The notes: generated by a model from the letters alone, not told the origin. Counted from the first letter of the stretch, positions 29,827-45,192 are shown. The stretch is DNA of 64,000 nucleotides from Oopsacas minuta (GCA_024704765.1 JAKMXF010000066.1:496001-560000); one strand, 5' to 3'. A program made the numbers and translations.

Positions 29827-29991
29827 ATTTCAAAATATATGGAAAGATAGTTTGAATAGAGATTTTCTAATTTTGCTGATTCCTGTGATTTAATAAATTT
29901 TCCCTACAACAGGTGTACCATATAATCTCCCTTCTTTGAAATAAGAGTATTAGGCCGAGTCTTATGAACTCTAAAGATAAGAATATGGATA
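29827..29991 (+). repeat. 165-bp direct repeat, copy 1 (left flank of 21-bp array)
   Basis: atttcaaaatatatggaaag...aagaatatggata is identical to 30899-31063 on base-by-base reading. Confidence 0.95.
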
Positions 29992-30898
29992 GAAAAATCA
30001 AGCAAAAATATAGAAAAATCAAGCAAAAATATAGAAAAATCAAGCAAAAATATAGAAAAATCAAGCAAAAATATAGAAAAATTAAGCAAAAATATAGAAA
30101 AATCAAGCAAAAATATAGAAAAATCAAGCAAAAATATAGAAAAATTAAGCAAAAATATAGAAAAATTAAGCAAAAATATAGAAAAATCAAGCAAAAATAT
30201 AGAAAAATCAAGCAAAAATATAGAAAAATCAAGCAAAAATATAGAAAAATCAAGCAAAAATATAGAAAAATCAAGCAAAAATATAGAAAAATCAAGCAAA
30301 AATATAGAAAAATTAAGCAAAAATATAGAAAAATCAAGCAAAAATATAGAAAAATTAAGCAAAAATATAGAAAAATTAAGCAAAAATATAGAAAAATCAA
30401 GCAAAAATATAGAAAAATCAAGCAAAAATATAGAAAAATTAAGCAAAAATATAGAAAAATCAAGCAAAAATATAGAAAAATTAAGCAAAAATATAGAAAA
30501 ATTAAGCAAAAATATAGAAAAATCAAGCAAAAATATAGAAAAATCAAGCAAAAATATAGAAAAATCAAGCAAAAATATAGAAAAATTAAGCAAAAATATA
30601 GAAAAATCAAGCAAAAATATAGAAAAATCAAGCAAAAATATAGAAAAATCAAGCAAAAATATAGAAAAATCAAGCAAAAATATAGAAAAATCAAGCAAAA
30701 ATATAGAAAAATCAAGCAAAAATATAGAAAAATTAAGCAAAAATATAGAAAAATCAAGCAAAAATATAGAAAAATCAAGCAAAAATATAGAAAAATTAAG
30801 CAAAAATATAGAAAAATCAAGCAAAAATATAGAAAAATTAAGCAAAAATATAGAAAAATCAAGCAAAAATATAGAAAAATCAAGCAAAAATATAGAAA
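29989..30898 (+). repeat. Minisatellite: 43 x 21-bp unit ATAGAAAAAT(C/T)AAGCAAAAAT
   Basis: 43 units counted. The only variation is C/T at one position (T in units 5, 8, 9, 16, 18, 19, 22, 24, 25, 29, 36, 39, 41). Confidence 0.97.
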
Positions 30899-31063
30899 AT
30901 TTCAAAATATATGGAAAGATAGTTTGAATAGAGATTTTCTAATTTTGCTGATTCCTGTGATTTAATAAATTTTCCCTACAACAGGTGTACCATATAATCT
31001 CCCTTCTTTGAAATAAGAGTATTAGGCCGAGTCTTATGAACTCTAAAGATAAGAATATGGATA
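30899..31063 (+). repeat. 165-bp direct repeat, copy 2 (right flank of 21-bp array)
   Basis: Identical to 29827-29991. Confidence 0.95.
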
Positions 31064-31293: not shown

Positions 31294-31599
31294 TCACAAA
31301 TATATTTCTAATTCTTGTTTTTCTAGCTGTATGAATTCTTCAATATCCTTCAAGTAGGTTCTTATATCTTCCTCCAATTCTTGTTTTTGTCTGTTAAGTG
31401 CAATTTTGGATTCCTTCAACCTGAAATATCTCGTTCCCTGTCGCAACTGCTCACGTCGTCTTTCTTTTCGCATTTCTTTAACCTTATCAGGGAATAAGTC
31501 TTTTATTTTCTTGGTAGTAAGTTTAACCAGATCTCTCCTCGTAATGGAACTGTCATTCCCTGAAAGATTTGAGTTTTGATAAAAATAAATATTATTCAT
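31294..31599 (-). CDS. Small non-canonical Maf/CNC-like bZIP protein (copy 1)
   Basis: DLVKLTTKKI..KERRREQLRQGTRYFRLK followed by Leu heptads. TATA-like gtataaatag at 31630-31639 on the minus strand. Confidence 0.7.
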   Translation of the reverse strand: MNNIYFYQNSNLSGNDSSITRRDLVKLTTKKIKDLFPDKVKEMRKERRREQLRQGTRYFRLKESKIALNRQKQELEEDIRTYLKDIEEFIQLEKQELEIYL

Positions 31600-32568
31600 T
31601 TCGTATTTGAGAAATTCCGATCTACAGTTCTATTTATACGTATACATTAGTATCATAGGGCGTATACATCTATTAATATAATATTAAGGATATGTTACGT
31701 TTTAAGGTTCCAATTACTGCTGCATAATTTTAGTTTACAGCACCTGTGCATCCTTTTATTAACTAAGATACCATTAAACATTTTAGCATCTATATTATAT
31801 TGACAAAAATTAAATTAACTAAACTGATACTGAAGTGTTTAGTTCGTGGAAATAGCTGAATTAATTAGTTTGTTTTAGGGGAAACTCAATGGGAATTTTC
31901 CTGTTCACACTTTTTATAATCTCTTTAATATCTTATTTGTAAGATAATGCAATCTTGACACTGAATAATTTCTTCACAATTCTCATGATATCTAGAAATG
32001 GATTCTGGATTACAGGTGTATAAATTCGCCATTTGTATATTTTCATATACACTATACCATAGGCTGTATCCACAAGTAGGGTTGATTATTGCTCAATCTT
32101 AACACTCATCTTTTATTTTTATTATAATTTCAATTTTTCATTGCTGTAAAACAATATTTATGTTTGCCTGTTTTATTGATAGAACCGTTTGGAGCATGTT
32201 CTCAATATGATTGTTGAATACATCTGGTCCTTCATAATAACTAGACTAGTACTCTGATGCATTTGTTTGAGTACAGTGGAGGTAAAGGGCTACTATTCAG
32301 GGTAATGTTATATTGTCTATAACACTACTTGTATGTTCTGTCCTTACGTAATTTAATTTTGTAAAATAATGCAATATAGTAAATACCTTTAATGATATAA
32401 TTATAATAGATGTTTACTAACAAGATCTGCGCGCAAAAGTTGTTTTCTTAATTGTGTGTGCTGAATGCATTGTCATTAGCGCGGGATTATGAGTAAATAC
32501 ACATGTATATTATTATTATTCACATTATACGAAGATACGTGAATTTATAACTGATCTTAACGTATTGC

Positions 32569-32853
32569 TTATTGCACTTTAACAGAACGAACAACTCTGC
32601 TATTTTCCTTTGTATTTGAGTTATTCAAATCATCTATTTGGCTCTTCAAGCTAAGTATTTCATTTTCTAGATTATTTCTTTCATTCAAAAGTTCTCGTTT
32701 TTGTTTTCTTAGTCTCATATTTTGAACATTAAACTTGACTTGTTCTCTACGTCTCTCTTTTAACAGCACTTCTTTATGCTTGTCATTAATAGCTAAACGA
32801 GACAGCTCAGTAGTTGAGTAGCATACCAGATATTCCTGTAATTGTGAACACAT
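32569..32853 (-). CDS. Small non-canonical Maf/CNC-like bZIP protein (copy 2)
   Basis: ATG at 32853. LKERRREQVKFNVQNMRLRKQKRELLNERNNLENEILSLKSQIDDL has four Leu heptads. Confidence 0.72.
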   Translation of the reverse strand: MCSQLQEYLVCYSTTELSRLAINDKHKEVLLKERRREQVKFNVQNMRLRKQKRELLNERNNLENEILSLKSQIDDLNNSNTKENSRVVRSVKVQ

Positions 32854-33974
32854 GAATATGTAATCGAGAACCTTCAAAAATTGTTATTATTTGTAAATTG
32901 TTTCCATCTGCACACACATGCATTTGGTTTATATATTTTCTGATTTATCTTAAACTCATTTATTACTCAACAAGTTATTACATTTTTTGAGGGAATAATC
33001 TATTAAATCACACTAAATACAACTGTAAGCAGCTAACTCTATTCAAGGTGATGGGATATACTAAATTTATCCTCACCTAATACTCTCAGGATCACATAGG
33101 GTCAATTCATATTGGAAAATAATTCCTTTAATAGCAGGTTAGCGTGTTAGCAAAGGAAATCTGTGCTAATTTCGACTTGCTATTTCATAGACCAACATTA
33201 CTGTATAAGTAAAAAGCAATTATTCAACTAATTCTGAAAAGGAGTGCTGGAGTGTATATAAATTTTGTCTCAATGGGTTAGAATCTATAATATTAAATCT
33301 CAATGATTGTTTGTCGGTTGTCAAGGAAAGGATTTACGGTATGCAATTTTGAAATTGTTGCATAACTATGTATTTATCGTGTTTATCAAGGAAGTAAATA
33401 GAATTCAATAAGACTTCACTAAATATATGAAACATGCTGAATCCTATTTTCACACTTTTGGATTAATCATATGTAAATTTATTGCTGTTTTTATGAATAT
33501 AAAGTAAACAAATTTCAAAATTGAGGTAGAATCATACTTTCAATGGTTATACTGAGGTAATCGAGTATGCTGAGTCTGAATATTGTAAACAACATCAATA
33601 TTATTAAATCTTAATTGTTGTTTGTCTGTTTGTTTGTCCGTTGAATACTTCGAGGCGCAATGCGCCGAGTTCATCGCGAAGCGACGAGTCAAAGGCTCGT
33701 ATCAAATATATCCATTCGTGCATCAGTTATACGTAAATTTGAATGTAATATTATTTCCGATACTATGTTATTAAGATGGCGCAATACGTATTTCCATATT
33801 AATTACATTTTGTAATGCCATAGGTAAACTGGATTGTGTAATTCAGTCAGAAATTCCCGGCTTTACCTACACGCCTACAACTAGCAGGAGGGTGTTATGC
33901 CAGGAATAGTATCATTCACTGATGTAATCTTTATTATTGAAAGAAACATTTTCAAAGAACTGAAAATTTGCATA

Positions 33975-34016
33975 TATTTAAAAGTGAGTAGCGCATGCGC
34001 TACTCACTTTTAAATA
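33975..34016. other. Perfect spacer-less 42-bp palindrome
   Basis: tatttaaaagtgagtagcgca|tgcgctactcacttttaaata; all 21 pairs checked. Confidence 0.95.
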
Positions 34017-34321
34017 CGTCAAAATTTGATCCCCTACTTATTACTGAACTATCAGGAAACTAATTTATTATATTTTACTTTTGTTTAGAAATGCATACTC
34101 ACCAAAAGTAAGTGTTATGTGCAGATCCTCGCTCACCGGCTGATTGTGATAGAAGATTGTATATGTATAGCGCCATAACGGCCTGTATTCATTACATTTA
34201 TAGCTAGAACGTTTGCTATCATGATATCATTGTACTTCCTTGAAATATTTAGATAATACTAGCTATAATTAATTATCAAATACACTGATTATTCAGATAA
34301 TTATCAAATGTTATAGTTTTA

Positions 34322-35767
34322 ATGGCAGGCAAAGAACAAAATGACAAAGACGAAGAGCTAACAGGCCCCCTAGAGAAGATAAAGATGGAAATTCAGAAAG
34401 TCTCCGGCTGGAAATCCGAGATGGAGAAGGAGGAAGAAGAATCAATAGCTCATATAGCGAAGAGGTATGCTGTTCTCTTGTCAACTCTAGAGAAGAGAAG
34501 AGATAAATTAATCGGGAATACTAAGAAGAAATATGCTCTAGCGTTCTATGAGGCAGATCAGCAAATCTCTGAGTTGGAAACTTGTCTATCTTCACATTTA
34601 GAACTGGTTGAACAACAAATGGTAGATGTTAAAGATGTTTCAGCGGTTTCACTTCAGTCCCTTGAGGGGAAACTTAAAGATTGGAAGTTAAAACTTAAAG
34701 ATTCTGAACAGAAACTTGATTCCTGTTCTCAAGAATTCAGTTTCAATTATAATCTGAGTAGAATTATGCTAGATCGACACGAGGTTAATTGTTTATTAGA
34801 AAACGTAGGTACTTCTAACGTAGATATTGGCTGTACAGTGGAAGAGCATGTGTTATCTGGTATACACGGTCATTCAATACTACTTGATATGTGTATTGAT
34901 GTGAATACAGGGACTTACTACTTCCTGAAGCAAGACACAGGACAATGTGCAGAGATAGCTGTATGTACTTTTGATAGGCAAAAACTCAATGCTCTGAATG
35001 TAATACAGATTGATAGAGCATTCTCTGGCTCATTCTGGTCGTTAGGGAAGAAGAAACCTATTCCACACAGCATAACAATTAACTCACGTCATCTGTTCGT
35101 TAGTTTCCAGCATGAGAGCGCTGTAGTAATAATGACTAGAGCAGGAGAGTATATAGACACTATGAGTATTGATAAATGTAAGAATCCTCTTAACTTGTCT
35201 ATGGTAAAAGGCTTAGCTTCTGATTTAGAAGATTACGTATTGATATGTGATAGCGGGAATGATCGTGTATTAATCTTACAGCCAGATCTAAAGGCTACTT
35301 TTCCTATCTCACACAATCGTAACTCTATTCCTTATCTCTGTGCTCCAGAGAAAGTTTCTTCTGCTGGACATCAGAAATTGGTTGTTCTACACAAAGGTTA
35401 TCCTCCGCTTCATATTTATAATTTCCACGGTGAAGTCATTGCTCTATTCGGAGCTCTCGGTAGCGGTATGAATCGGTTTGTACCACAGAATTTATGCTGG
35501 ATTCCTCAGCGTAAAAATATACCCGAGTTGTTCCTATGTGTTGGTGATTATGGACCTCTTCCTGATTACGTCATTGGTTTTGATTTGAGTGAGGGGATTG
35601 TCTATCATTTTGGGAGTGTAGATCCAGATCGTATTGAGGGTACAGTAACACCTCCAGCTATTTTAGCTGATCCTAATGGTATCGTGCTACTGACTATTTC
35701 AGATAGAAATATTCTGTTTGTCATTCGTAATAATTCTGAGTTCTTTAGCTGCAATAAGGAGAACTAA
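34322..35767 (+). CDS. Coiled-coil + degenerate NHL beta-propeller protein (TRIM-NHL-like without RING/B-box)
   Basis: N-terminal heptad-rich region; NHL-like VKGLASD..VLICDSGNDRVLIL and CAPEKV segments. Confidence 0.75.
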   Translation: MAGKEQNDKDEELTGPLEKIKMEIQKVSGWKSEMEKEEEESIAHIAKRYAVLLSTLEKRRDKLIGNTKKKYALAFYEADQQISELETCLSSHLELVEQQMVDVKDVSAVSLQSLEGKLKDWKLKLKDSEQKLDSCSQEFSFNYNLSRIMLDRHEVNCLLENVGTSNVDIGCTVEEHVLSGIHGHSILLDMCIDVNTGTYYFLKQDTGQCAEIAVCTFDRQKLNALNVIQIDRAFSGSFWSLGKKKPIPHSITINSRHLFVSFQHESAVVIMTRAGEYIDTMSIDKCKNPLNLSMVKGLASDLEDYVLICDSGNDRVLILQPDLKATFPISHNRNSIPYLCAPEKVSSAGHQKLVVLHKGYPPLHIYNFHGEVIALFGALGSGMNRFVPQNLCWIPQRKNIPELFLCVGDYGPLPDYVIGFDLSEGIVYHFGSVDPDRIEGTVTPPAILADPNGIVLLTISDRNILFVIRNNSEFFSCNKEN

Positions 35768-35920
35768 TTAGCATGTTTGAGAGTTTATCCTTCGGAATTA
35801 TGTAAATTTGTATATCAATTAATCTATTTCTGAACATTTCAATATTTGTAGAAAATATTCCATATGCATAAGAATATTTGAATATTTCATTTGTTTTGAA
35901 TGAAGTCTTTACTTATACAT

Positions 35921-35990
35921 AAGCGGTTCCCAACCTTTTTCACCTGCTGGACCCTCTATTCTAATTTTAACACATTCTGTGGACTCCTCC
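35921..35990. mobile_element. Left-end fragment of hAT-type MITE
   Basis: aagcggttcccaacctttttcacc..ttaacacattctgtggac, shared with the 38955 copy. Confidence 0.6.
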
Positions 35991-36044
35991 GTAGACTGCA
36001 ATACAAATTTTGAGAATTAATTAGTAGATTTTAATTGAGTTATC

Positions 36045-38812
36045 ATGGCACACACAAAGTCAAGCAACACTAATTTCCGTGCTATGAAGAGGATTGGATA
36101 TTTATTGAACTTTATTTACAGTCTTGGATACATAGTAAGGTTCTTCCACCAATTATTCTACATTCTAAAATGTCAACTAAACAAGCTAAGAGGGTTAGAA
36201 ACAGTAACAAAGATAGTCTGGAGTGATAATGAGATATTAAACTGCTCGGCTGTGCGTCTTTCTAGAATGATAAGAAGTAGGAGTGTAACTTCTGAGTTAG
36301 TTGTACAAACATTCATTGATAGAATTAATGAAGTTAATCCTGTTATCAATGCTGTAGTATGTGATAACTTTGTTCAAGCACTCAAGAGAGCTAGAGAGGT
36401 AATTTCTATGTAAATCTATCCATATTCGTCAGGATTGGGGAAATTGTACTATTTTTCACTTTTTTGAAGTAGAAAACTCCCGAAATTCTTTATTAAAACT
36501 TACAGTCAACTCCTGTTATATCGAAGCTCAAGGGACCGCGATAATTTTGACGGTTTGGGACCATATTTGTGTAATTAGACTTCTATATAAGCGGGTAGTT
36601 CGATACATCCGTGTTCGATCTAAAGGGAGTTAACTGTATTTACAAATAATATTTCAATTAGATTGATGCATATCTGGATGGACCTACTGAATCCTTCCCC
36701 TCTGACCTATCCCCAGAAAATGCTCCTCTTGTTGGTGTTCCCTGTTCCATCAAGATGAGTATATTCGTTACAGACATGGTGAATGATGTTGGTGTATGGT
36801 GTCGTAGAGGTCGAGTAGCTAGTAGAGATGCTGATGTTGTAGTGAGGCTGAGGAAAGCTGGAGCTATTCCTCTCGCGGTTACTAACACATCTGAGTTCTG
36901 TTTCTTTTGGGATAGTTGTAATAAAGTGCATGGAGCTACCAAGTAAGTAACTTTTATAATATACGTAGAATCGCGTTAATACGAACAAATATTTGCACAA
37001 TGTCAAGTCTCTACAATTGTTATTCAATTGGTACTAACGAGGTTTCTTTGTATGTACGCGATTTATACGAAAATCCATACGATACGTTTATGAGTGCTAA
37101 TGCTATTTCAATGAATATACAATTCATACTACATGTATGTATATAGCAACCCTTACAATACTCAACATACGAGTGGAGGTAGTTCTAGTGGTGAGGGAGC
37201 TCTTGTAGCTGCTCAAGGATCCCCGTTTGGTATCGGAACAGATGGAGGAGGTAGTATTAGGATGCCTGCTTACTTCACAGGGGTATACGGTCACAAGTGT
37301 AGTCCTGATATGGTATCAAATGACGGACAGTTTCCTCATATTGAGGATACACGTATCTCTATAACTACAGGGCCTCTATGTAGATATCCGGAAGATATAG
37401 GACCTGTTATGCGAGTTATCTCATATAGTCCTTTCCCTGAGTGGAGTGAGGTTATATATGTTATTAATAATACAGTCAACTACCGTTACATCGATTCTGA
37501 AAGGACTGTAATATTTACTTCGATATAACCGATGAAACTTATGTTTTGTAACGGAAATTGACTCTAAGATCTAATTTTAATGAGCTACACATTAGAACTC
37601 AGATAAGACATACTCCCTCGGGAAACTCAGCATAGTACGTTTTAACTGAAGTATGTCTTATCCGAGTTCTACCGTATATTATAATATTTTCATTAGATAG
37701 ATGCATCCAAGCTTAAGATCTACTACTTGCTGGAGCCTAACATATCCTTATCTTCCTCAATAGATCCTGTTATCACAGAACGTACTAGATCTCTCATAGA
37801 CACCCTAACAACCAAGTGTAGTATGCACGTAGAGCCGTATGATAATAAGTTATTCCAATGGAGTCTTCCTATATGGACAGGGACTAATCTCATGCATGGA
37901 GATCCTTCAATTGATAAACAGCTGTTAATTAATGATCCAACTTCTAAACGTGTGAGTTATGTCGCAATTTCTATTGTAAATAAAGTTAACTTCCGTTATA
38001 TCGAAGCTCAAAGCAAAAAGATCGCGATAATTACTTCCATATAACCGTAAAATGATATAACAGGAGATGATTGTATCTATTTTAACAAACTTTTGATCCA
38101 CATTACTAATTCAGTAATTTTCACAAAAACTAGAATTTTATTAGTTCCTGCCTATACATATATTATTGTTATTTATGACTGACTGTATGTGTGTGTAGAT
38201 TAACTTTGGCTGGGAGCTATTAAAGAGCTTTGTCTGTGCAGCTAACTTTAACATGTTCACAAACATCCTCGCTCTATCTCAAAGGAGAACTAAATTTAAT
38301 TCTAATGCTGGGTTTAACCATAAAATGTATAATGTCGGACAGAAGCTGAAGCAACAATTAGAAGATTTACTGGGGGATAATGGAGTGCTATTGTTTCCTT
38401 CTCACCCTACTACAGCCCCTAGACATAATATGCCTCAGGTAATGTAGTGATAGCTATATAGCTATTAGTATATTTCAAATGCTAACTAATATAATGAGAG
38501 TTTGATGGGGAAATTTGGAACTTCTTATCTGTAAACTTGTTATGATAAATCTGTGAATATTTCGGTTTGAAATATTACATTTCATTATATATTTTCTCTA
38601 AGGTAATGCCTACGAACTTCTCATTCACTGCAGTATTCAATGCTATACTAATGCCTGTAACTCAAATACCGCTTGGACTTTCACCAGACGGTCTACCATT
38701 AGGAGTACAACTTGTAGCTAAACAAGGGAATGATCATTTAACTATTGCACTAGCTGAATATATCTCAGAAGTGACCAAGGTAGGATGTACTCTTCCTACA
38801 GGTTGTACATGA
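36045..38812 (+). CDS. FAAH2: Fatty-acid amide hydrolase 2-like amidase, multi-exon
   Basis: Spliced amidase signature: GVPCSIK (catalytic Lys), GAIPLAVTNTSE, NPYN...GGSSSGEG, GTDGGGSIRMPA (catalytic Ser), LFPSHPTTAP, GLPLGVQLVA. Confidence 0.85.
36503..36636. mobile_element. MITE family A in FAAH2 intron
   Basis: ta|cagtcaactcctgttatatcgaag ... ttcgatctaaagggagttaactg|ta. Confidence 0.88.
37473..37564. mobile_element. MITE family A in FAAH2 intron
   Basis: ta|cagtcaactaccgttacatcga ... gtaacggaaattgactc|ta. Confidence 0.72.
37590..37674. mobile_element. MITE family C in the same FAAH2 intron
   Basis: cattagaactcagataagaca ... tgtcttatccgagttctaccg|ta. Confidence 0.75.
37983..38073. mobile_element. 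MITE family A in FAAH2 intron
   Basis: ta|aagttaacttccgttatatcgaagc ... gatataacaggagatgattg|ta. Confidence 0.72.
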
Positions 38813-38954
38813 ATTTATATAAAATTATTAGTTGGAAATTGTAGAGTTTAGTTTGAGTTACTTGCATATTCTTGTATTATTTATTATTATTTATTATTAA
38901 TATATTATTTGATATTTTGAGTGATTATCTTATAATTTATCAAAAATTAAGACG

Positions 38955-39071
38955 CAGTGTTTCCCAACCTTTTCACTAGGGATCCTCTAATTTTACAATT
39001 TTAATACATTCTGTGGACCCCTGCTGTCGTCAGTGTACCACCAAAGGGTCATGGACAGGTTGGGAACACTG
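38955..39071. mobile_element. hAT-type MITE
   Basis: TIRs cagtgtttcccaacct ... aggttgggaacactg. TSD not preserved. Confidence 0.7.
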
Positions 39072-39114
39072 AAATACGGTACTGAAAGATTTAATATCAT
39101 TTGTAGCTTTCTGT

Positions 39115-40537
39115 ATGGTTCTAGTCAAAATGAAGAAATTTTCCAAAAAGCATAAAATTAGAATTTTACTTCTATCATCACTCATAATTATTGTTCTTAT
39201 TCTAATTGGATTGAGTATTGCACATGAATACCCAAAACAGACAGCTCATTTCAAAAGGCTGGTATATTTACTTTACAGCAAAGTTATCGGAGATATTGCT
39301 AAAAGACCTATTACGACTAATCTCTCTGCCTCAGATAGGTAATTTGCTAGTGAACAAATACTGATTTTACTTGCAAATATGCAAAATTTGTAGGTTGATA
39401 TTTGAGAGTTGTGCTCCATTTTACAAAGAGGATCATAAAGTAGTGAAGAGGGTTTGTCCTCGAAATATGAGGTTTCGACCTGCTAATAAAGCTAATGACG
39501 TCACGGCTTTGATAAGTTTTCCTGGATCAGGAAACACATGGATGAGACAGATTATGGAAGAAGCTACTGGTATATATACTGGAGCTATATATTGTGATGA
39601 GGATCTGAAGAGAGCAGGGTTTCTTGGTGAGTTGATAACTACCATACATCCCATCTGGCTTGTTAATAGGTGAACTCAAGTGTATTTGCAAAGTGTTAAA
39701 AACTTTAACACTATTTTATTATTTAGGAGAATATCTTACTTCTAACGCAGTTATAGCTATTAAAACACATTTAACGGACAATAGATTAATTAATGGAAAA
39801 TCTGGAAAATCATTTGATTCTGTTATATTTCTAACACGCAATCCTTATGATGCTATAATAGCTGAGGCTAACAGGGAATGGACTGAAGACCATACTAAAG
39901 TAGCACAGATAGAAAAATTCAAAGATTTGAAAAACTGGAGTGAATTCGTATCTAAGATGTCAAAGATATGGGAAATGACAGTCAGAACTTGGTTGCAAGA
40001 GGATAAACCGTTGCTGATTGTAAGGTAAGATCCTTTATTCAATTTTACGTTCATACGCGCATATACGTACTTGACAAAAGTTTGAATGGTAGAATTTTGA
40101 GTACAGTGGAGTTCACCTATTAGCAAGTCATATAGTGTGCGAATTTCCCTTGCTGCTATTTAGAGGAATTATTTCCAATACAAAATGGACTCTAAGTCCC
40201 TGAAAATATATGCTATTAGGCGAATAATGGTAACAGACTAACCTAAACACACAACTGTATATTATTGAGAAATTATATTTTAAGATATGAAGATTTGAAA
40301 TCAGACCTACTTAACCAATTAAAGCGTATACTAACATTCCTGAAGGTTCCATATACTGAAGATCAGCTCCATTGTGTTCTCAAGGCAAACTTAGATACAT
40401 TTAAACGGAAGAATGGTAGCGAAAATGAAGAAAAATACAAGAAATATTATTATACAGATGAACTTGTACAGTATGTTAATTCTACAATTGAAAATGTTAG
40501 ACCGATTTTGAATAAATTTAGCATATTCTATCTATAA
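39115..40537 (+). CDS. WSCD1/2-like Golgi sulfotransferase (type II membrane), multi-exon
   Basis: N-terminal TM; 5'-PSB ALISFPGSGNTWMR..EEATGIYTG; IKTH; 3'-PB FLTRNPYDAIIAE; RYEDLK. Confidence 0.82.
40104..40257. mobile_element. MITE family B in sulfotransferase intron
   Basis: ta|cagtggagttcacctattagcaag ... acaactg|ta. Confidence 0.8.
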
Positions 40538-41288
40538 ATTCAATATTTATTGATTATACCGAAAAGATGAATATGTTTGCATAATATGATAATCAAGAGA
40601 AATGACTTTGAGAACTGGTTCCCAAACTTTTCACCAGTGGATCTCTTTACAAATATTATATTTTAACACAACCATTTCCTACAGATGTCATTCTCATATC
40701 ACCCTTCCATATACATTACTGGAACAATAATTACAAAGCTTCTATCAAACACTAAATTGAATAAATTATAGGGGATCTCCCTATCTCACGAATATTGCAA
40801 ATACTGAAACTATACTAATTTGAATATCAATAGCATATGCATATACAACACCCAATTGCATGTAACTCAATATTATATCTGAGCATTATTCCCTAATGTG
40901 TCCCTTCTTCAGGTATTATTCTGTCAGCAAACATTGCTATTTTAATTATCTTAACTTATCTAATTTTAAACACATTTGTTACCCTAGATCAAATTTATAG
41001 TTCATAAACCTACACACTCTACTGGTATAATCGGGTATTATGCTAATGGGGTATTATACCCAAATTAGTTTTCTAATTAAGTGGCACTTACCACTTACAG
41101 AAAGTGGACAATAAATAGTTTTAAATATCGATGATTTGAGGGTTTATTAAAATCCAAAGAGTATGTCATAATTCCCTAAAAATTACGAATTAAGCTATTG
41201 TATGGAACTTATTTGAAATTTCTTGAAAAATTACAAAATTTAAAACAGGAAATTATATCCATTTTTGACATATTAGTTACATCACCTA

Positions 41289-42194
41289 ATGGCATCCAAC
41301 GATTTAACTATTACAGATAGTCATCACCATTTATGGACACCTGAAACTCACTCATGGTTGAAATCAGCTGATGACCCAGATAATCCCCTTGCTATTTTCA
41401 GATCTGTGCAGAAATATTTGCTACCTGATTTTATAACAGATATAGAACCATACAACCTAACAAAGTCTGTTTACGTTCAATCTAATAGAGATGGTGATCC
41501 TGTAGATGAAACAAAATGGGTACAAACTATATCTGATACAAATCCTAAGGGATTTCCCCATGGGATAGTAGGTAGTTGTGACCTAACATCAAAAGACCTA
41601 CCTCTGATTTTAAGTAAGCATATAGAGTTCGCGAATTTTAGAGGCATACGACAGGGATTAATGTTCCACCCAGCGAAACCGCAACTACGCTTCGCTTCAC
41701 ACGATAATTATCTTACTGATATAAATTGGCAGCAGGGATATTCTCTTCTCTCTACTCACAACTTATCATTCGATATGTTAGTGTTACCTCATCAATACAC
41801 ACGAGTATATGACGTCATAAAGGCTAATCCAGCTGTTCCTGTCGTGATCAATCATTGTGGTGCAATGTTTGACAGAAATGAAGATACTATGAAATTATGG
41901 AGAGATGGAATTGCAATGTTAGCTTCATTACCTAACTGTTATATGAAGTTATCTGGCCTTCAATCGGCACAAATTAATCCTGATGATTTCGCCCTTATCA
42001 AGAGTATAATCCAACAGTTAATTACACTGTTTGGTACTGATAGGTGTATGTATGCTTCTAACTACCCTGTTGACAAGATATATGCTACTTATAAGCAAGT
42101 AATGAATGCATTTGAGTTCTCCATTGCTGATTATACACTGGAGGAGAAGAAAAATATATTCGCGAAAAACGCGAATATATTCTACAGATTGTAG
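41289..42194 (+). CDS. Amidohydrolase_2 TIM-barrel (L-fucono-lactonase/COG3618-like), intronless
   Basis: DSHHHLW, VYVQS, FRGIR, LSFD, VINHCG, MKLSGL, MYASNYPVD motifs. Confidence 0.85.
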   Translation: MASNDLTITDSHHHLWTPETHSWLKSADDPDNPLAIFRSVQKYLLPDFITDIEPYNLTKSVYVQSNRDGDPVDETKWVQTISDTNPKGFPHGIVGSCDLTSKDLPLILSKHIEFANFRGIRQGLMFHPAKPQLRFASHDNYLTDINWQQGYSLLSTHNLSFDMLVLPHQYTRVYDVIKANPAVPVVINHCGAMFDRNEDTMKLWRDGIAMLASLPNCYMKLSGLQSAQINPDDFALIKSIIQQLITLFGTDRCMYASNYPVDKIYATYKQVMNAFEFSIADYTLEEKKNIFAKNANIFYRL

Positions 42195-42327
42195 ATTGAC
42201 TTTTGAATACCCTTTAGATCGTTTAGATCGAATAATATACACATTTTAGTAATTATGTATCTTGGAAAATTATTGTATTTTTATACACATTTTGAGGATA
42301 ACGATAGATGTATGGTGTTTCCAATTA

Positions 42328-42471
42328 CAGTGATGTTTGACTATTAGCAATATTCGCTAAATAGCAATGAGACTTCCATTTTGTATTGCAAATAATTCCT
42401 CTAATCGCAAGTTCGCGTATTAGTAAGGGAAGTTCATACAAGAGTCTACTTGCTAATAGCGAACTCCGCTG
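42328..42471. mobile_element. MITE family B, intergenic (reverse orientation)
   Basis: ta|cagtgatgtttgactattagcaa ... cttgctaatagcgaactccgctg|ta. Confidence 0.8.
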
Positions 42472-43414
42472 TAATATACAAGATTATCTAAGATGGTTTA
42501 AAATAATTACTTACGAGTAATGACACTAGTTAATTATCCTTTTCATCCCCTTTCATGGTAATTATTTTGAAGGTGTGTTTAGGCAAGATGTATTGAATGT
42601 TTGGGATTATTTTATTATTCATAAACCTAGGCTATGTCTTCTGTCAATGATTACAAGTGTTTCTAATGGGACGAATAATTAATAATGGATTCACCCACCT
42701 CATTTCGATATTGTATGGAAGAATTATACCTAATGGTTATTTGGTTAAGCAATGTAATAAATAATTTGAGTGTTTATTCTTTGAAGATAATTGCTAATGA
42801 CACAATTCATTTGGGATAGTCATTTTATATTGACCTATGCTTACAACCATTATTCTACTAACCAAATAGTTCTTGTGGAAGCGAAAAATACATCTACCGT
42901 ATGTATTATCTTGTGGCCGCCATTAAACAAATTTGTCTTTGTAGAACTCAAGCTAATAAGTTTAATTCTTTGAATTGTCTCATATATATTGTATTAGTCA
43001 TTTGTAATATTATATTCTAAGAAAATATTATACGAATCTCTATACTGATCTAATATAATAATAGCTGTTGTATCTCTGTGGAAATCGAAAGTGAAATTCA
43101 AACCAGTTTCAAGATCAGTAAGTGCTTATCCAATAGAAATTACCAAGTAAATTAATTGAGATAGCACAAAATGCTTCTCAAACAATATCTATGTTATTCT
43201 ATATGGAACTGGTACTAAATGTGTTGCAAACTATGATATAATTAACTCAACTACTTTCAAGTAATACACAGAGGAATGAGTATTAAGGTATACTGAGTAT
43301 AGATCATTATACCGGTACATGAGTATATACAAATGAGGTAAAGGACTGAAAACTATATAATGGAAGAAATCATACATTAATTAACTTCATCTCTAAACAA
43401 AAATATAAACAAAT

Positions 43415-43651
43415 ATGCCCAAATTTGCCCTTTCAGGAGAAGATCTGTTATTGGTATCCCCATCAATGTTAATACATTTTGCCCGAGATGATCAACATTA
43501 CAATAAGATGTTGAAAGATAGACGTAGGCTACAAGTTAAGTATAATGTACAAAAACTGAGACTTAAGAGACAGAAGACAAATCTCATAAATGAAGCTATC
43601 AAATTGAGGAAGGAGATACATTTTCTGAAACAACAAATGGATCTAATATGA
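43415..43651 (+). CDS. Small non-canonical Maf/CNC-like bZIP protein (copy 3)
   Basis: LSGEDLLLVS..KDRRRLQVKYNVQKLRLKRQKTNLINEAIKLRKEIHFL; clear paralogue of copy 2. Confidence 0.7.
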   Translation: MPKFALSGEDLLLVSPSMLIHFARDDQHYNKMLKDRRRLQVKYNVQKLRLKRQKTNLINEAIKLRKEIHFLKQQMDLI

Positions 43652-44787
43652 TTTATTCTACATCACATCTCATAGAATCTTGTCTCCAGCAGTAATTGAA
43701 TACAAATAAGTATTTTTAAGCATTGGAAAATTAGCTCACTGTCTACATATGTATATCTTATTCATTCATTATATTTACTAAGTTTTGTTATTCCATAGAT
43801 ATTAATATATGATTCATAATTTATAAATGAAGTATTATTTTAATTCAAGTTGTTTTATATTATTTTGTCATAAGAATTGTTAAAATGGTATGTCAATAGT
43901 TCTTGGATATCCAGCTAGTACTTCGGAATGACTATTCCACATTTCAATGGAAAAAGAGGTGTTGTAAAGTTCCTCTAGGGAGAATACGCCCAACGTATGT
44001 GCGCTCGAAATAAAGGACTAAACCCTCTGCCATAGGTATAGATAGATTCTATTATTTGCGTACTCCTATAGCAAAAAATATTGATTGGGAGTACAACTAA
44101 TAAGATCTAGTGAATAGAATTTGAGTCTAATTATCGCTGTCTAAAGATGGTTCCATTTCGGAATTTATTCTCTCGTCACCTACCGCGCAATCGCGTATCG
44201 AAATGTCGGTATCCCACCCAGCGGCTCAGCCAGTCTTGGCATACTACAGGTGTGGGAGGGGGCAGGTGGCATGAAATTGGGAAAGCGACATTGCCTAGCG
44301 CAATCTACAAAAGGTGGCTACTTATCTACTCCACCCTATTCACTTTAGACGTCTTATGAGGCGCAAGGAGTTGAGTAAACCCAGTTTGTCATTAATCTTT
44401 GCTGTAAGACGCGAATTCTGGGTAATCCCTATCATGTAAACATGTAAACAAATCATGTAACATTAGTCAAATTTTAAACTCATCATAGGTAATATTTCTA
44501 TTTATAAGAAAATTTATAGAGTTTCACTTTCACTTTGTGTTGTACATATTCTAACACTACAATTGTTTACAAATATTATTGTAGGGTTTGTTTACATAAT
44601 CTCAGGTGTTTTTGTTGTTTTGTAATTTTATAGTAATCTATATTTATGATGTTTCAATTTATAACCGTCCTCTTGAAATCACTTATAGAGCTAGGGACAC
44701 AAGATATGTACACGTAATGTCGAACAACTCTGCACTTATAAATAGAGACCTAAATCAAATAATTTGAGAGAAGCTAAAATAAACACA

Positions 44788-45192
44788 ATGAACTCGCCAT
44801 ACAATCATTACTATCCTACTTACCAACTTGTTCATGATTCATTCATTCCACAGTCAAATTCAGGAATATCTACAAATTATAATATCAATAACAGAACGTA
44901 TATGAACCAACCCAGAAGGAACATACAATATCAATACAATTCCCATAATTATTCTCATTCATTCACAATAGAAGATTTAGTTAATCTTAAGCTAAGTGAA
45001 ATTAGGAAATTATACACTGACCCTGTAGAGAGGGCTGAAGTGATTAAGATTAGACGTAAGGAGCAGATTAGACAAGCTGTAACTCTGTGGAGGATTAGGA
45101 ATATAAAGAAATCTTTGATTGAAGAGAAACTGGAATTAGAAAAGGAGATTGAAATGATGAAGAATGAAATGTATGGAGGATTTACAGAATAA
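44788..45192 (+). CDS. Non-canonical Maf/CNC-like bZIP protein with Tyr/Asn/His-rich N-terminus (copy 4)
   Basis: SFTIEDLVNLKLSEIRK..KIRRKEQIRQAVTLWRIR plus zipper. TATA box cttataaatag at about 44737; ATG at 44788. Confidence 0.75.
   Translation: MNSPYNHYYPTYQLVHDSFIPQSNSGISTNYNINNRTYMNQPRRNIQYQYNSHNYSHSFTIEDLVNLKLSEIRKLYTDPVERAEVIKIRRKEQIRQAVTLWRIRNIKKSLIEEKLELEKEIEMMKNEMYGGFTE

Follow-up and report, generated by a model that had tools for sequence, protein, structure and literature searches.

Miniature Maf/CNC-derived bZIP genes in a glass sponge with a replaced basic-region asparagine and a hinge shortened by two residues

The window analysed here, a stretch of 64 000 nucleotides from Oopsacas minuta (JAKMXF010000066.1, 496001-560000), contains four miniature bZIP genes, g1 to g4. 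We are highly confident that these are real, selected, Maf/CNC-derived genes in which the basic-region Asn has been replaced and in which the hinge between the basic region and the zipper has lost two residues in a single event. In the textbook signature, N-x7-R/K-x9-L-x6-L-x6-L, the first zipper Leu is found at Arg+10. The four proteins keep a basic region adjoining a zipper as well as the Arg, and depart from the signature in the Asn and in the Arg+10 spacing. The full statement, that they belong to a glass-sponge-restricted CNC/Maf-derived subclade that binds DNA as dimers with altered geometry, is in our estimate evenly balanced.

All four genes are intact, intronless, single-exon open reading frames of 78-134 amino acids, located as the earlier note had them, at 31294 and 32569 on the minus strand and at 43415 and 44788 on the plus strand. 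On the minus strand, g1 (31294-31599, 101 amino acids) has its basic core at residues 47-60 (31420-31461); Leu52 (31444-31446) occupies the Asn position, Arg60 is retained and Leu68 (31396-31398), the first Leu of the zipper, lies at Arg+8. The neighbouring g2 (32569-32853, minus strand, 94 amino acids) was read from its first ATG, the program-called TTG start at 32877 being unnecessary, and has a basic core at residues 34-47 (32713-32754), Val39 (32737-32739) in the Asn position and Leu55 (32689-32691) at Arg+8. On the plus strand, the basic core of g3 (43415-43651, 78 amino acids) spans residues 36-49 (43520-43561), with Val41 in the Asn position and Leu57 (43583-43585) at Arg+8. The longest protein, g4 (44788-45192, plus strand, 134 amino acids), starts with a low-complexity N-terminus; its basic core covers residues 89-102 (45052-45093), with Ile94 (ATT, 45067-45069) in the Asn position and Leu110 (45115-45117) at Arg+8.

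Each gene is preceded on its own strand by a TATA-like box: TATAAAT at 31632-31638, 39 nt upstream of the g1 ATG; TATATAA at 32929-32935, 82 nt upstream of that of g2; TATATAA at 43354-43360, 61 nt upstream of that of g3; and TATAAAT at 44737-44743, 51 nt upstream of that of g4. A TATAWAW element 39-82 nt before the ATG in all four genes exceeds the two copies counted earlier. It is present in 11 of 12 gene copies over three species, the background being about 0.5 per 300 nt.

The two gene pairs flank a block of four unrelated conserved genes (34322-42194, plus strand) encoding an NHL-like protein of 481 amino acids, an intron-containing amidase, a sulfotransferase-like protein and an Amidohydro_2 protein. 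This block is outside the bZIP system and serves as an anchor for synteny. Assemblies ERZ25069837 and ERZ25071281 contain all four genes, intact and in synteny, and in further assemblies clade members are found beside the same neighbours. Syntenic orthologs of g1 are located at L019:10600-10896 and L082:6877-7173, and those of g2 at L019:10001-10243 (P0004) and L082:7500-7742. For g3 they are P0005 (L020:10001-10240), P0003 (L021:10001-10240) and P0007, and for g4 they are L020:10874-11173, with Ile in the Asn position, L021:10819-11109, with Asn (AAT), and P0009, also with Asn.

The claim of selection made in the earlier note is supported by these comparisons. For g1-g4, dN/dS lies between 0.12 and 0.42 at a dS of 0.28-0.56 and between 0.2 and 0.39 once dS is saturated. 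Conservation is strongest in the basic region, with 50 of 80 columns invariant versus 92 of 230 elsewhere (Fisher p = 6.6e-4), and in g3 18 of its 20 columns are invariant over three species. Its net charge is +6 to +9 per 20 residues in all four genes, and non-basic residues are fixed within it as well, for example in QVK[YFL]NVQKLR across assemblies. The Asn replacement and the short hinge are selectively maintained in at least seven sponge-like assemblies.

The four proteins share a Maf/CNC-type pre-basic region, followed by RR-x2-Q-[L/V/V/I]-x7-R and the zipper. Leu, Val, Val and Ile are found opposite the Maf Asn in g1-g4, respectively, while the Arg eight residues further on is retained, as had been read from the sequence previously. 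This register agrees in three independent alignments: a profile of the four genes against the MafG and MafB chains, an HMM iterated over the family members in this genome, and an hhalign comparison with canonical paralogs. HMMER places a two-residue gap after R-x-K-K relative to the Maf sequence RVKRvtQK, and the hinge gap in hhalign is 16 residues, which equals 2 modulo 7. An alignment-free heptad-phase score places the first zipper 'd' position at Arg+8 in g1, g2 and g4 and in the g3 orthologs P0003, P0005 and P0007. The basic region of g3 itself is mis-registered by the family HMM, and its Arg+8 is a direct reading (d positions L-L-L-L-I). Together, these results bear out the earlier Arg-to-Leu spacing of eight. 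The Arg is present without exception in the 14 members of the clade alignment and in the full set of 31 clade proteins, and the clade consensus for the contact stretch is Q-[VLI]-[KR]-x-[NAGS]-[VT]-x-x-x-R.

Derivation from the Maf/CNC family, which had also been proposed, is upheld at the level of profiles and of fold. The clade matches canonical N-R paralogs that pass Pfam with 96.9% probability (hhalign, E = 1.5e-10), and MafG and MafB are the best sequence matches among solved structures (E = 1.3e-4 for the four-gene profile versus MafG), the ancillary-helix (extended homology) region aligning to MafG residues 4-40. Singly, no member reaches the gathering threshold of Pfam bZIP_Maf (PF03131, 22 bits): only two of the 14 clade members give any match, and the best single-sequence E-values, 0.016-0.05, are below the cut-off. 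Neither of the contact motifs NxxYAxxCR (Maf) and NxxAAxxCRxRK (CNC) is present in the clade consensus.

In the genome examined (61.46 Mb in 365 contigs), the mini Maf/CNC genes have expanded to about 90. Two further members of the clade are found on contig C298, one of them a gene of 143 amino acids, so the 'family of four' of the earlier note was drawn too narrowly. The loss of Asn, taken there as a hallmark, is true of all four genes but is the commoner state in the expansion, where only 30 of 86 distinct members retain it (replacements are Met in 25, Ser in nine, and others). The Arg+10 hinge, in contrast, is kept in 76 of the 86, and outside the clade Arg+8 occurs among them only in an independent pair, L072/L029, which has a Pro in the hinge. 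Judged from the sequences, what sets g1-g4 apart is the -2 hinge; Asn loss alone does not define them.

Only 26 representatives match among 1.84 billion proteins, and every one of them lies on a large contig, either eukaryote-sized or from a sponge metagenome, that is syntenic with the g1-g4 locus, in agreement with the lineage-specific origin suggested before. Arg+8 is found in 26 of the 31 clade proteins, and the residue in the Asn position is Val in 15, Lys in ten, Ile in three and Leu, Arg and Asn in one each. In trees built without bilaterian sequences the clade sits within the sponge's own expansion, in its CNC-like half (NxxAAxxxR type; SH-aLRT 91). In a tree computed without the hinge, all Arg+8 rows fall on one branch (support 98/98). 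A sister group, 'RINV', combines the same recoded basic region with a canonical hinge, the hinges of the nearest relatives vary (Arg+6, +9 and +10), and one lineage of g4 orthologs has regained Asn (AAT versus ATT). From the order of events on the tree we infer that the Asn was first replaced by an aliphatic residue and the preceding Lys by Gln, the hinge still being canonical. Two hinge residues would then have been lost once, shifting the zipper from Arg+10 to Arg+8, and Arg+8 would have become fixed in all descendants save one Arg+9 protein.

The zipper is four to five heptads long, with at least four heptads that carry a hydrophobic 'd' residue: LLLLL in g2, LLLLI in g3, ILLM in g4 and, in g1, LLL with a one-residue skip after the second heptad. 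Most g-e' pairs are E-K or neutral, with a single repulsive E-E pair in each of g2 and g4, and zipper chemistry as deduced from the sequence allows homodimers. The AlphaFold2 monomer model of g2 (pLDDT 88) has helices at residues 3-11, 14-20 and 24-92, the last predicted to run as one continuous helix through the hinge with pLDDT above 90. The structures closest to this model are MafA, MafB and MafG, matched over 86-92 residues (Z = 7.2-7.4), and the Foldseek matches (E = 0.3-1.4) are weak for long helices. The hinges of g1-g4 contain no Gly or Pro, and the basic region is free of disruption by Pro, Gly or acidic residues.

Each protein has two short ancillary helices, a strongly basic helix RR-x2-Q-X-x7-R and the zipper, and would form zipper-driven dimers in which the basic helix retains its role in sequence-specific nucleic-acid binding. 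With the helix predicted to run on without a break, the -2 shift should turn each basic helix by about 200° and draw it some 3 Å toward the fork, and the canonical contact face would therefore be unavailable to a palindrome of the MARE/ARE type. The dimer may read DNA through a different stripe of residues, through a different arrangement of half-sites, or both, and the outcome would be a new specificity class rather than a dead partner. Since the basic region is conserved, we prefer this geometrically altered DNA binding by dimers to a dominant-negative role. The sub-threshold Pfam scores of single members, the weak structural matches and the failure to find transcript contigs for g1 or g3 count against it. 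Against it also stands the residue in the Asn position, which is not fully constant (V, I, L, K, R or N); this is odd for a key base-reading residue and expected if that face no longer meets the DNA. The variable hinge of the nearest relatives could mean that geometric coupling in the clade is loose, and conservation of the basic region could instead reflect a role in nuclear import or in protein contacts. We put forward only tentatively that this is a bZIP class kept by selection, its basic helix offset from the phase of the zipper by two residues, that still binds DNA through a contact face or half-site arrangement new among characterized bZIPs.

A rather less probable reading, and yet the best surviving alternative, is that the out-of-phase hinge disables the basic region and that the proteins are non-DNA-binding or half-site-only partners that titrate or re-aim the mini-bZIP family of about 90 genes, as CHOP does among the C/EBPs and Id among bHLH proteins. 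The loss of the canonical Asn, the tiny size without space for an activation domain, the many potential partners in the genome and the charged Lys and Arg residues at early 'a' positions are all in line with this. GCN4 (Pu & Struhl, 1991, as cited in PMC5344682) tolerates an insertion of seven residues between basic region and zipper and not of two, four or six, and by analogy a -2 hinge should misplace the basic helix. The sponge hinge is likewise altered by a non-multiple of seven, but whereas these GCN4 mutants lose DNA binding, the -2 change has become fixed and is held by purifying selection alongside a conserved basic region. This region is the most conserved segment, uncharged residues included, and remains strongly basic and undisrupted; a decoy would not need the exact Arg+8 found in 26 proteins, and the g-e' pairs for self-pairing are mostly attractive or neutral.

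It is unlikely that the heads are decoupled, with the unit of ancillary helices and basic region docking largely alone and the zipper acting as a tether through a bending hinge. Skn-1, a zipper-less relative of CNC proteins, likewise docks on DNA largely by itself; the sponge genes differ from it in having retained the zipper. The Maf/CNC ancillary helices are kept, close relatives differ in hinge length (Arg+6, +8, +9 and +10) and the L072/L029 pair has its hinge Pro, all as this reading would have it. The absence of Gly and Pro from the g1-g4 hinges, the uninterrupted helix in the AlphaFold2 model and the strict conservation of Arg+8 inside the clade argue against a bending hinge.

The earlier note had allowed that its register might be wrong, in which case these would be ordinary bZIPs with the true contact residues two positions off. 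Sub-threshold individual Pfam scores and the mis-registration of g3 by the family HMM speak for such an artefact, which is nonetheless very improbable, given that the three alignments concur and that the alignment-free phase score rates Arg+8 about twice as high as the next phase. Direct reading with gapless anchoring on the zipper, moreover, puts Glu or Leu at the Asn position, Lys-Glu opposite the RR pair and a non-conserved residue at the Arg position. Chance reading frames or decaying pseudogenes within AT-rich intergenic DNA have next to no probability left: no transcript contigs were found for g1 or g3, and g2 and g3 are absent from the protein collection, but this reading is effectively refuted by frames that are intact in every assembly examined despite saturated synonymous divergence, by a dN/dS well below 1, and by conserved synteny and TATA elements.

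Among known systems, the Maf proteins (MafG, MafB and MafA; PF03131), which among solved structures match best in sequence and fold, share with g1-g4 the two ancillary helices, the RR...R frame, the R-[LV]-[KR]-[KR] stretch after the Arg and a leucine zipper, and the small Mafs also share the small size and the lack of an activation domain. The sponge proteins differ in having Val, Leu or Ile for Asn, no NxxYAxxCR, a hinge two residues shorter and sub-Pfam scores. The bilaterian small Mafs are reported to have arisen after the cnidarian-bilaterian split (PMC4736632), and on this dating, with trees lacking bilaterian sequences, the sponge genes are probably not their orthologs. With CNC proteins (Nrf2/NFE2) the clade shares its place in the CNC-like half, an Ala at Asn+3 in g4 and the sequence NCRKNKK retained by one relative in another assembly; it differs in having no Neh-type or activation region, in the lost Asn and in the shortened hinge. 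The 'novel bZIP' classes of Phytophthora sojae (C-R, R-R, V-R and others), conserved, transcribed and presumed functional according to the available text of PMC4046829, are likewise a lineage-specific expansion in which Asn is replaced, by Val among others, and Arg is kept; they belong to an unrelated lineage and bZIP subfamily without the ancillary Maf/CNC helices, and that text makes no mention of a changed spacing between basic region and zipper. The other recoded mini Maf/CNC genes of the genome share the expansion, the intronless mini format and the frequent replacement of Asn, and differ in mostly keeping Arg+10.

The nine-residue spacer between the Arg and the first Leu counts as one of the constants by which bZIPs are defined. 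Here, a -2 hinge arose once and has persisted in many glass-sponge lineages alongside a basic region that is highly conserved, and this provides a natural test of the geometric rule. With the canonical hinge of the 'RINV' sister group, the clade offers matched natural pairs for how hinge phase sets the geometry of the DNA site. The clade also forms a separate branch of a large and apparently undescribed expansion of mini Maf/CNC regulators, in an animal otherwise noted for the loss of many transcription factors (PMC10280926). If the proposed reading is true, the spacing between basic region and zipper would reflect a frozen choice rather than physical necessity.

The four open reading frames that the earlier note had placed in the window are present as described: g1 (31294–31599, minus strand, 101 amino acids), g2 (32569–32853, minus strand), g3 (43415–43651, plus strand, 78 amino acids) and g4 (44788–45192, plus strand, 134 amino acids). 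The start of g2 is best taken at the first ATG, at 32853, which gives a protein of 94 amino acids. Aligned with each other, the four proteins share the frame RR-x2-Q-[L/V/V/I]-x7-R-[LI]-[KR]-x4-x-L, followed by a heptad zipper. A profile of the four picks out MafG (E = 1.3 × 10−4) and MafB as the best sequence matches among solved structures. When compared with Maf using HMMER, the pre-basic part pairs with the Maf ancillary region, the aliphatic residue lies opposite the Maf Asn, the Arg is kept and a two-residue gap opens against Maf 'RVKRvtQK'. An HMM iterated on the Maf-like ORFs of the genome itself returns the identical register for g1, g2 and g4, with g3 mis-registered. Alignment by hhalign of 14 members of the clade (g1–g4 and their relatives) against 22 canonical N-x7-R paralogs (probability 96.9%, E = 1.5 × 10−10) pairs Val with Asn and Arg with Arg, with a zipper gap of 16 residues, which is 2 modulo 7. 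An alignment-free heptad-phase score places the first zipper Leu ('d') eight residues after this Arg (Arg+8; Arg+10 in canonical bZIPs) in g1, g2, g4 and the orthologs of g3, and is about twice that of any other phase; g3 itself is Arg+8 by direct reading. The replaced Asn, the retained Arg and the Leu at Arg+8 reported earlier are thus recovered in the same register by HMMER, hhalign and, except for g3, the family HMM.

With the zipper as an ungapped anchor, the Asn position would fall on Glu or Leu and the RR pair would face Lys-Glu, and because of this misplacement the gapped register is the only coherent one. Canonical geometry is restored neither by the ungapped zipper-anchored registers nor by an alternative frame on the Asn at +3 of g2 and g3. 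That the Arg+8 register is an alignment artefact is effectively excluded. The g1 zipper (window 31333–31398; L019:10600–10896) contains a one-residue skip after the second heptad, with Leu at Arg+8 and +15 and then at +23, +30 and +37; the three species compared all conserve it.

In single-sequence Pfam scans neither g1–g4 nor any of the 14 clade members scored above threshold, and only profile methods connect the clade with the bZIPs. The AlphaFold2 model of g2 (69-row alignment, pLDDT 88) contains helices at residues 3–11 and 14–20 and an uninterrupted helix at 24–92. In Foldseek the top nine hits of this model are without exception chains of MafA, MafB or MafG, aligned over about 90 columns at weak E-values of 0.3–1.4, and a second structural aligner gives Z scores of 7.2–7.4 over 86–92 residues for Maf chains. 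As the helices are long, these matches are supportive but not decisive, and the case for homology rests on the sequences.

The four genes flank, two on each side, a block of unrelated genes in a window of 30–36% GC. The gene order is LRR-EGF, g1 (−), g2 (−), an NHL-like protein of 481 amino acids, an intron-containing amidase, a sulfotransferase-like gene, Amidohydro_2, g3 (+), g4 (+), 7tm_2, ARPC3 and SPMIP11. In assemblies B (ERZ25069837) and C (ERZ25071281) all four genes are intact and gene order is conserved over ∼25 kb. This microsynteny of about 12 genes, between window 25365–50606 and the orthologous loci L019, L020, L021 and L082, is kept in the two other assemblies despite saturated synonymous sites. 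In ERZ25072730 (L084:8932–14593) four Arg+8 genes of the clade are grouped on one strand, all to the same side of the enzyme block, and a FLYWCH/MULE transposase-like ORF lies in their midst, so that the split 2+2 arrangement of the window is not universal. A 21 bp unit is repeated 43.4 times (97% matches) at 29989–30899, ∼400 bp downstream of the g1 stop codon, and yields long spurious ORFs in three frames.

Between assemblies B and C the mini-bZIPs have a dS of 0.28–0.56 and a dN/dS of 0.12–0.42. In comparisons with O. minuta, dS reaches saturation and dN/dS ranges from 0.2 to 0.39; the adjoining enzyme genes have a dN/dS of 0.07–0.13. The basic region (net charge +6 to +9) is the best-conserved segment, with 50 of 80 columns invariant compared with 92 of 230 elsewhere (Fisher p = 6.6 × 10−4), and in g3 18 of its 20 columns are identical in three species. 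With dN/dS well below 1 and the basic region most conserved, the proposal that the shared changes are held by selection is upheld. Of the 12 gene copies, 11 have a TATAWAW motif 18–91 nt before the ATG; the background frequency of this motif is about 0.5 per 300 nt. The TATA boxes noted earlier exist, but a count of two was too low, as all four genes have one (−39, −82, −61 and −51). No contig with g1 or g3, from transcripts or otherwise, came up in exact look-ups. A reading of the four ORFs as pseudogenes is effectively excluded.

HMM searches show that the family is not limited to four: two more members lie on contig C298, and 26 proteins match in a collection of representative proteins. The own-genome profile search located a member of 143 amino acids (L013:1426–1857, minus strand), in which Arg replaces the Asn and the hinge is Arg+8, and one of 118 amino acids (L013:2545–2901, minus strand) belonging to the 'RINV' sister proteins, which are aliphatic at the Asn position. 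The latter is Arg+6, whereas its RINV relatives in other assemblies (P0021, P0023, P0025 and P0026) are Arg+10. A word-based protein search returned just three outside proteins; the full HMM search, with a 14-member profile against 1.84 billion representative proteins (E ≤ 1 × 10−3), returned only these 26, all of 75–160 amino acids. Together with cluster mates they make 31 proteins, every one of which contains RR-x2-Q-X-x7-R, X being Val in 15, Lys in ten, Ile in three and Leu, Arg and Asn in one each. Of these, 26 have a zipper beginning at Arg+8, four at Arg+10 and one at Arg+6. Their sources are ENA assemblies with contigs of up to 2.5 Mb or sponge-type metagenome scaffolds (ERZ25069837, ERZ25071281, ERZ20067936, ERZ25072730, ERZ25072740 and three ERZ2348/9xxxx samples). 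At the loci inspected, the clade genes again have Amidohydro_2, amidase, NHL or 7tm_2 genes next to them. One relative (L085:2874–3203, ERZ20067936) has a CNC-like 'NCRKNKK' basic-region tail and the sole Arg+9 hinge seen.

A first quick family tree supported the clade moderately (SH-aLRT 86). The second tree was built from the pre-basic and basic parts and the zipper and rooted on six canonical CNC-like paralogs; the hinge was excised from its alignment, so the hinge trait cannot shape it. The whole clade is recovered at 100/98, with the RINV proteins as a basal grade that is aliphatic at the Asn position and Arg+10 (the O. minuta copy excepted), and a single branch (98/98) holds all Arg+8 rows and one Arg+9 row. 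According to this tree, the Asn-to-aliphatic and Lys-to-Gln changes came first, while the two-residue hinge loss occurred later, once, and was then kept. One subclade within the Arg+8 branch later changed to Lys or Arg at the Asn position. In g4 the codon is ATT (Ile) in O. minuta and assembly B, and AAT (Asn) in the orthologs from assembly C (L021:10819–11109) and the BUSC20-1 metagenome samples (L087:3001–3300). The latter is a one-base regain of Asn in one lineage, setting the N-x7-R frame on an Arg+8 hinge.

Own-genome searches covered 61 460 524 bases in 365 contigs. PF03131 (bZIP_Maf) matches 92 places, mostly intact ORFs of 100–170 amino acids, and none of g1–g4 is among them. Among 86 distinct ORFs the Asn position is occupied by Asn in just 30, making its loss common in the expansion, and by Met in 25, Ser in nine, Val and Ile in five each, Leu in three, Arg, Lys and Ala in two each and Cys, Gln and Asp in one each. 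The Arg is kept in 70 of the 86 and the first 'd' lies at Arg+10 in 76, and a changed hinge is rare. What sets the lineage-specific class of the earlier note apart is the Arg+8 hinge and not Asn loss, which the wider expansion shares. Among the family ORFs scored, Arg+8 occurs outside the clade only in an unrelated pair of Met-class mini-Mafs (L072:592–933 on C7 and L029:477–815 on C354; NKM.KYRRDSR), where it is independent and accompanied by Pro at Arg+5 (RMRTDPKKL). In a related, shorter protein (L055:434–649) the hinge is shorter still, with Gly-Gly. Four larger genes of 256–320 amino acids, clustered on C88 (L001–L004, C88:838965–846304), have the fully canonical Maf RRx.KNR.YA..CR and Arg+10, and are probably conventional Maf genes and the starting point for comparisons. 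An inverted pair of Met-class copies (L081, C310:600600–602900) carries stops inside the PF03131 match (one TGA and three TAA each); unlike the intact g1–g4, these look like decayed duplicates. The O. minuta genome paper makes no mention of bZIP or Maf, that of Aphrocallistes vastus mentions only one bZIP, of unknown function, and hexactinellids are absent from the reference survey of metazoan bZIPs.

Among known families g1–g4 come closest to Maf and CNC, which they match in homology, ancillary helices, Arg and zipper, but not in the Asn, the contact motif, the spacing or the Pfam threshold. For the Asn replacement, the nearest analogy is found in the 'novel bZIP' classes of oomycetes, among them a V-R class (PMC4046829). 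Limited literature searches found no description of natural bZIPs in which a non-heptad hinge-length change has become fixed in a group. Overall, what the earlier note observed is confirmed, while its interpretation is borne out only in part.

g1–g4 are bZIP homologs encoded by intact, selected genes, with a conserved, highly basic helix and a fixed Arg+8 hinge. In GCN4, a seven-residue insertion between basic region and zipper is tolerated while insertions of 2, 4 or 6 residues are not (Pu & Struhl, 1991, as reported in PMC5344682, which attributes this to misalignment of the two basic regions). A −2 hinge would turn each basic helix by ∼200° relative to the coiled coil, such that the face used for canonical contacts, and with it the former Asn position, would no longer point towards a MARE/ARE-type palindrome. 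Drift between Val, Ile, Leu, Lys, Arg and Asn at this position, with its neighbours fixed, would follow from such a turned face. The dimer may then read nucleic acid through a new stripe of contact residues or with its half-sites arranged in a new way. We consider the chances evenly balanced that the dimers still bind specifically in this manner. In favour of this reading, conservation is highest in the basic region and extends to its uncharged residues, the hinge length is held exactly, and in self-pairing most g–e′ pairs would be attractive or neutral; g2 and g4 of O. minuta have one E–E g–e′ pair each. Its main rival, in which the proteins act as dominant-negative or re-aiming partners of other mini-bZIPs, seems rather unlikely. 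A Skn-1-like arrangement with decoupled heads is quite improbable; the helix is predicted to be continuous through the hinge. To a mini Maf/CNC expansion of about 90 genes, the locus adds a single-origin clade with a conserved −2 hinge together with its canonical-hinge sister group.
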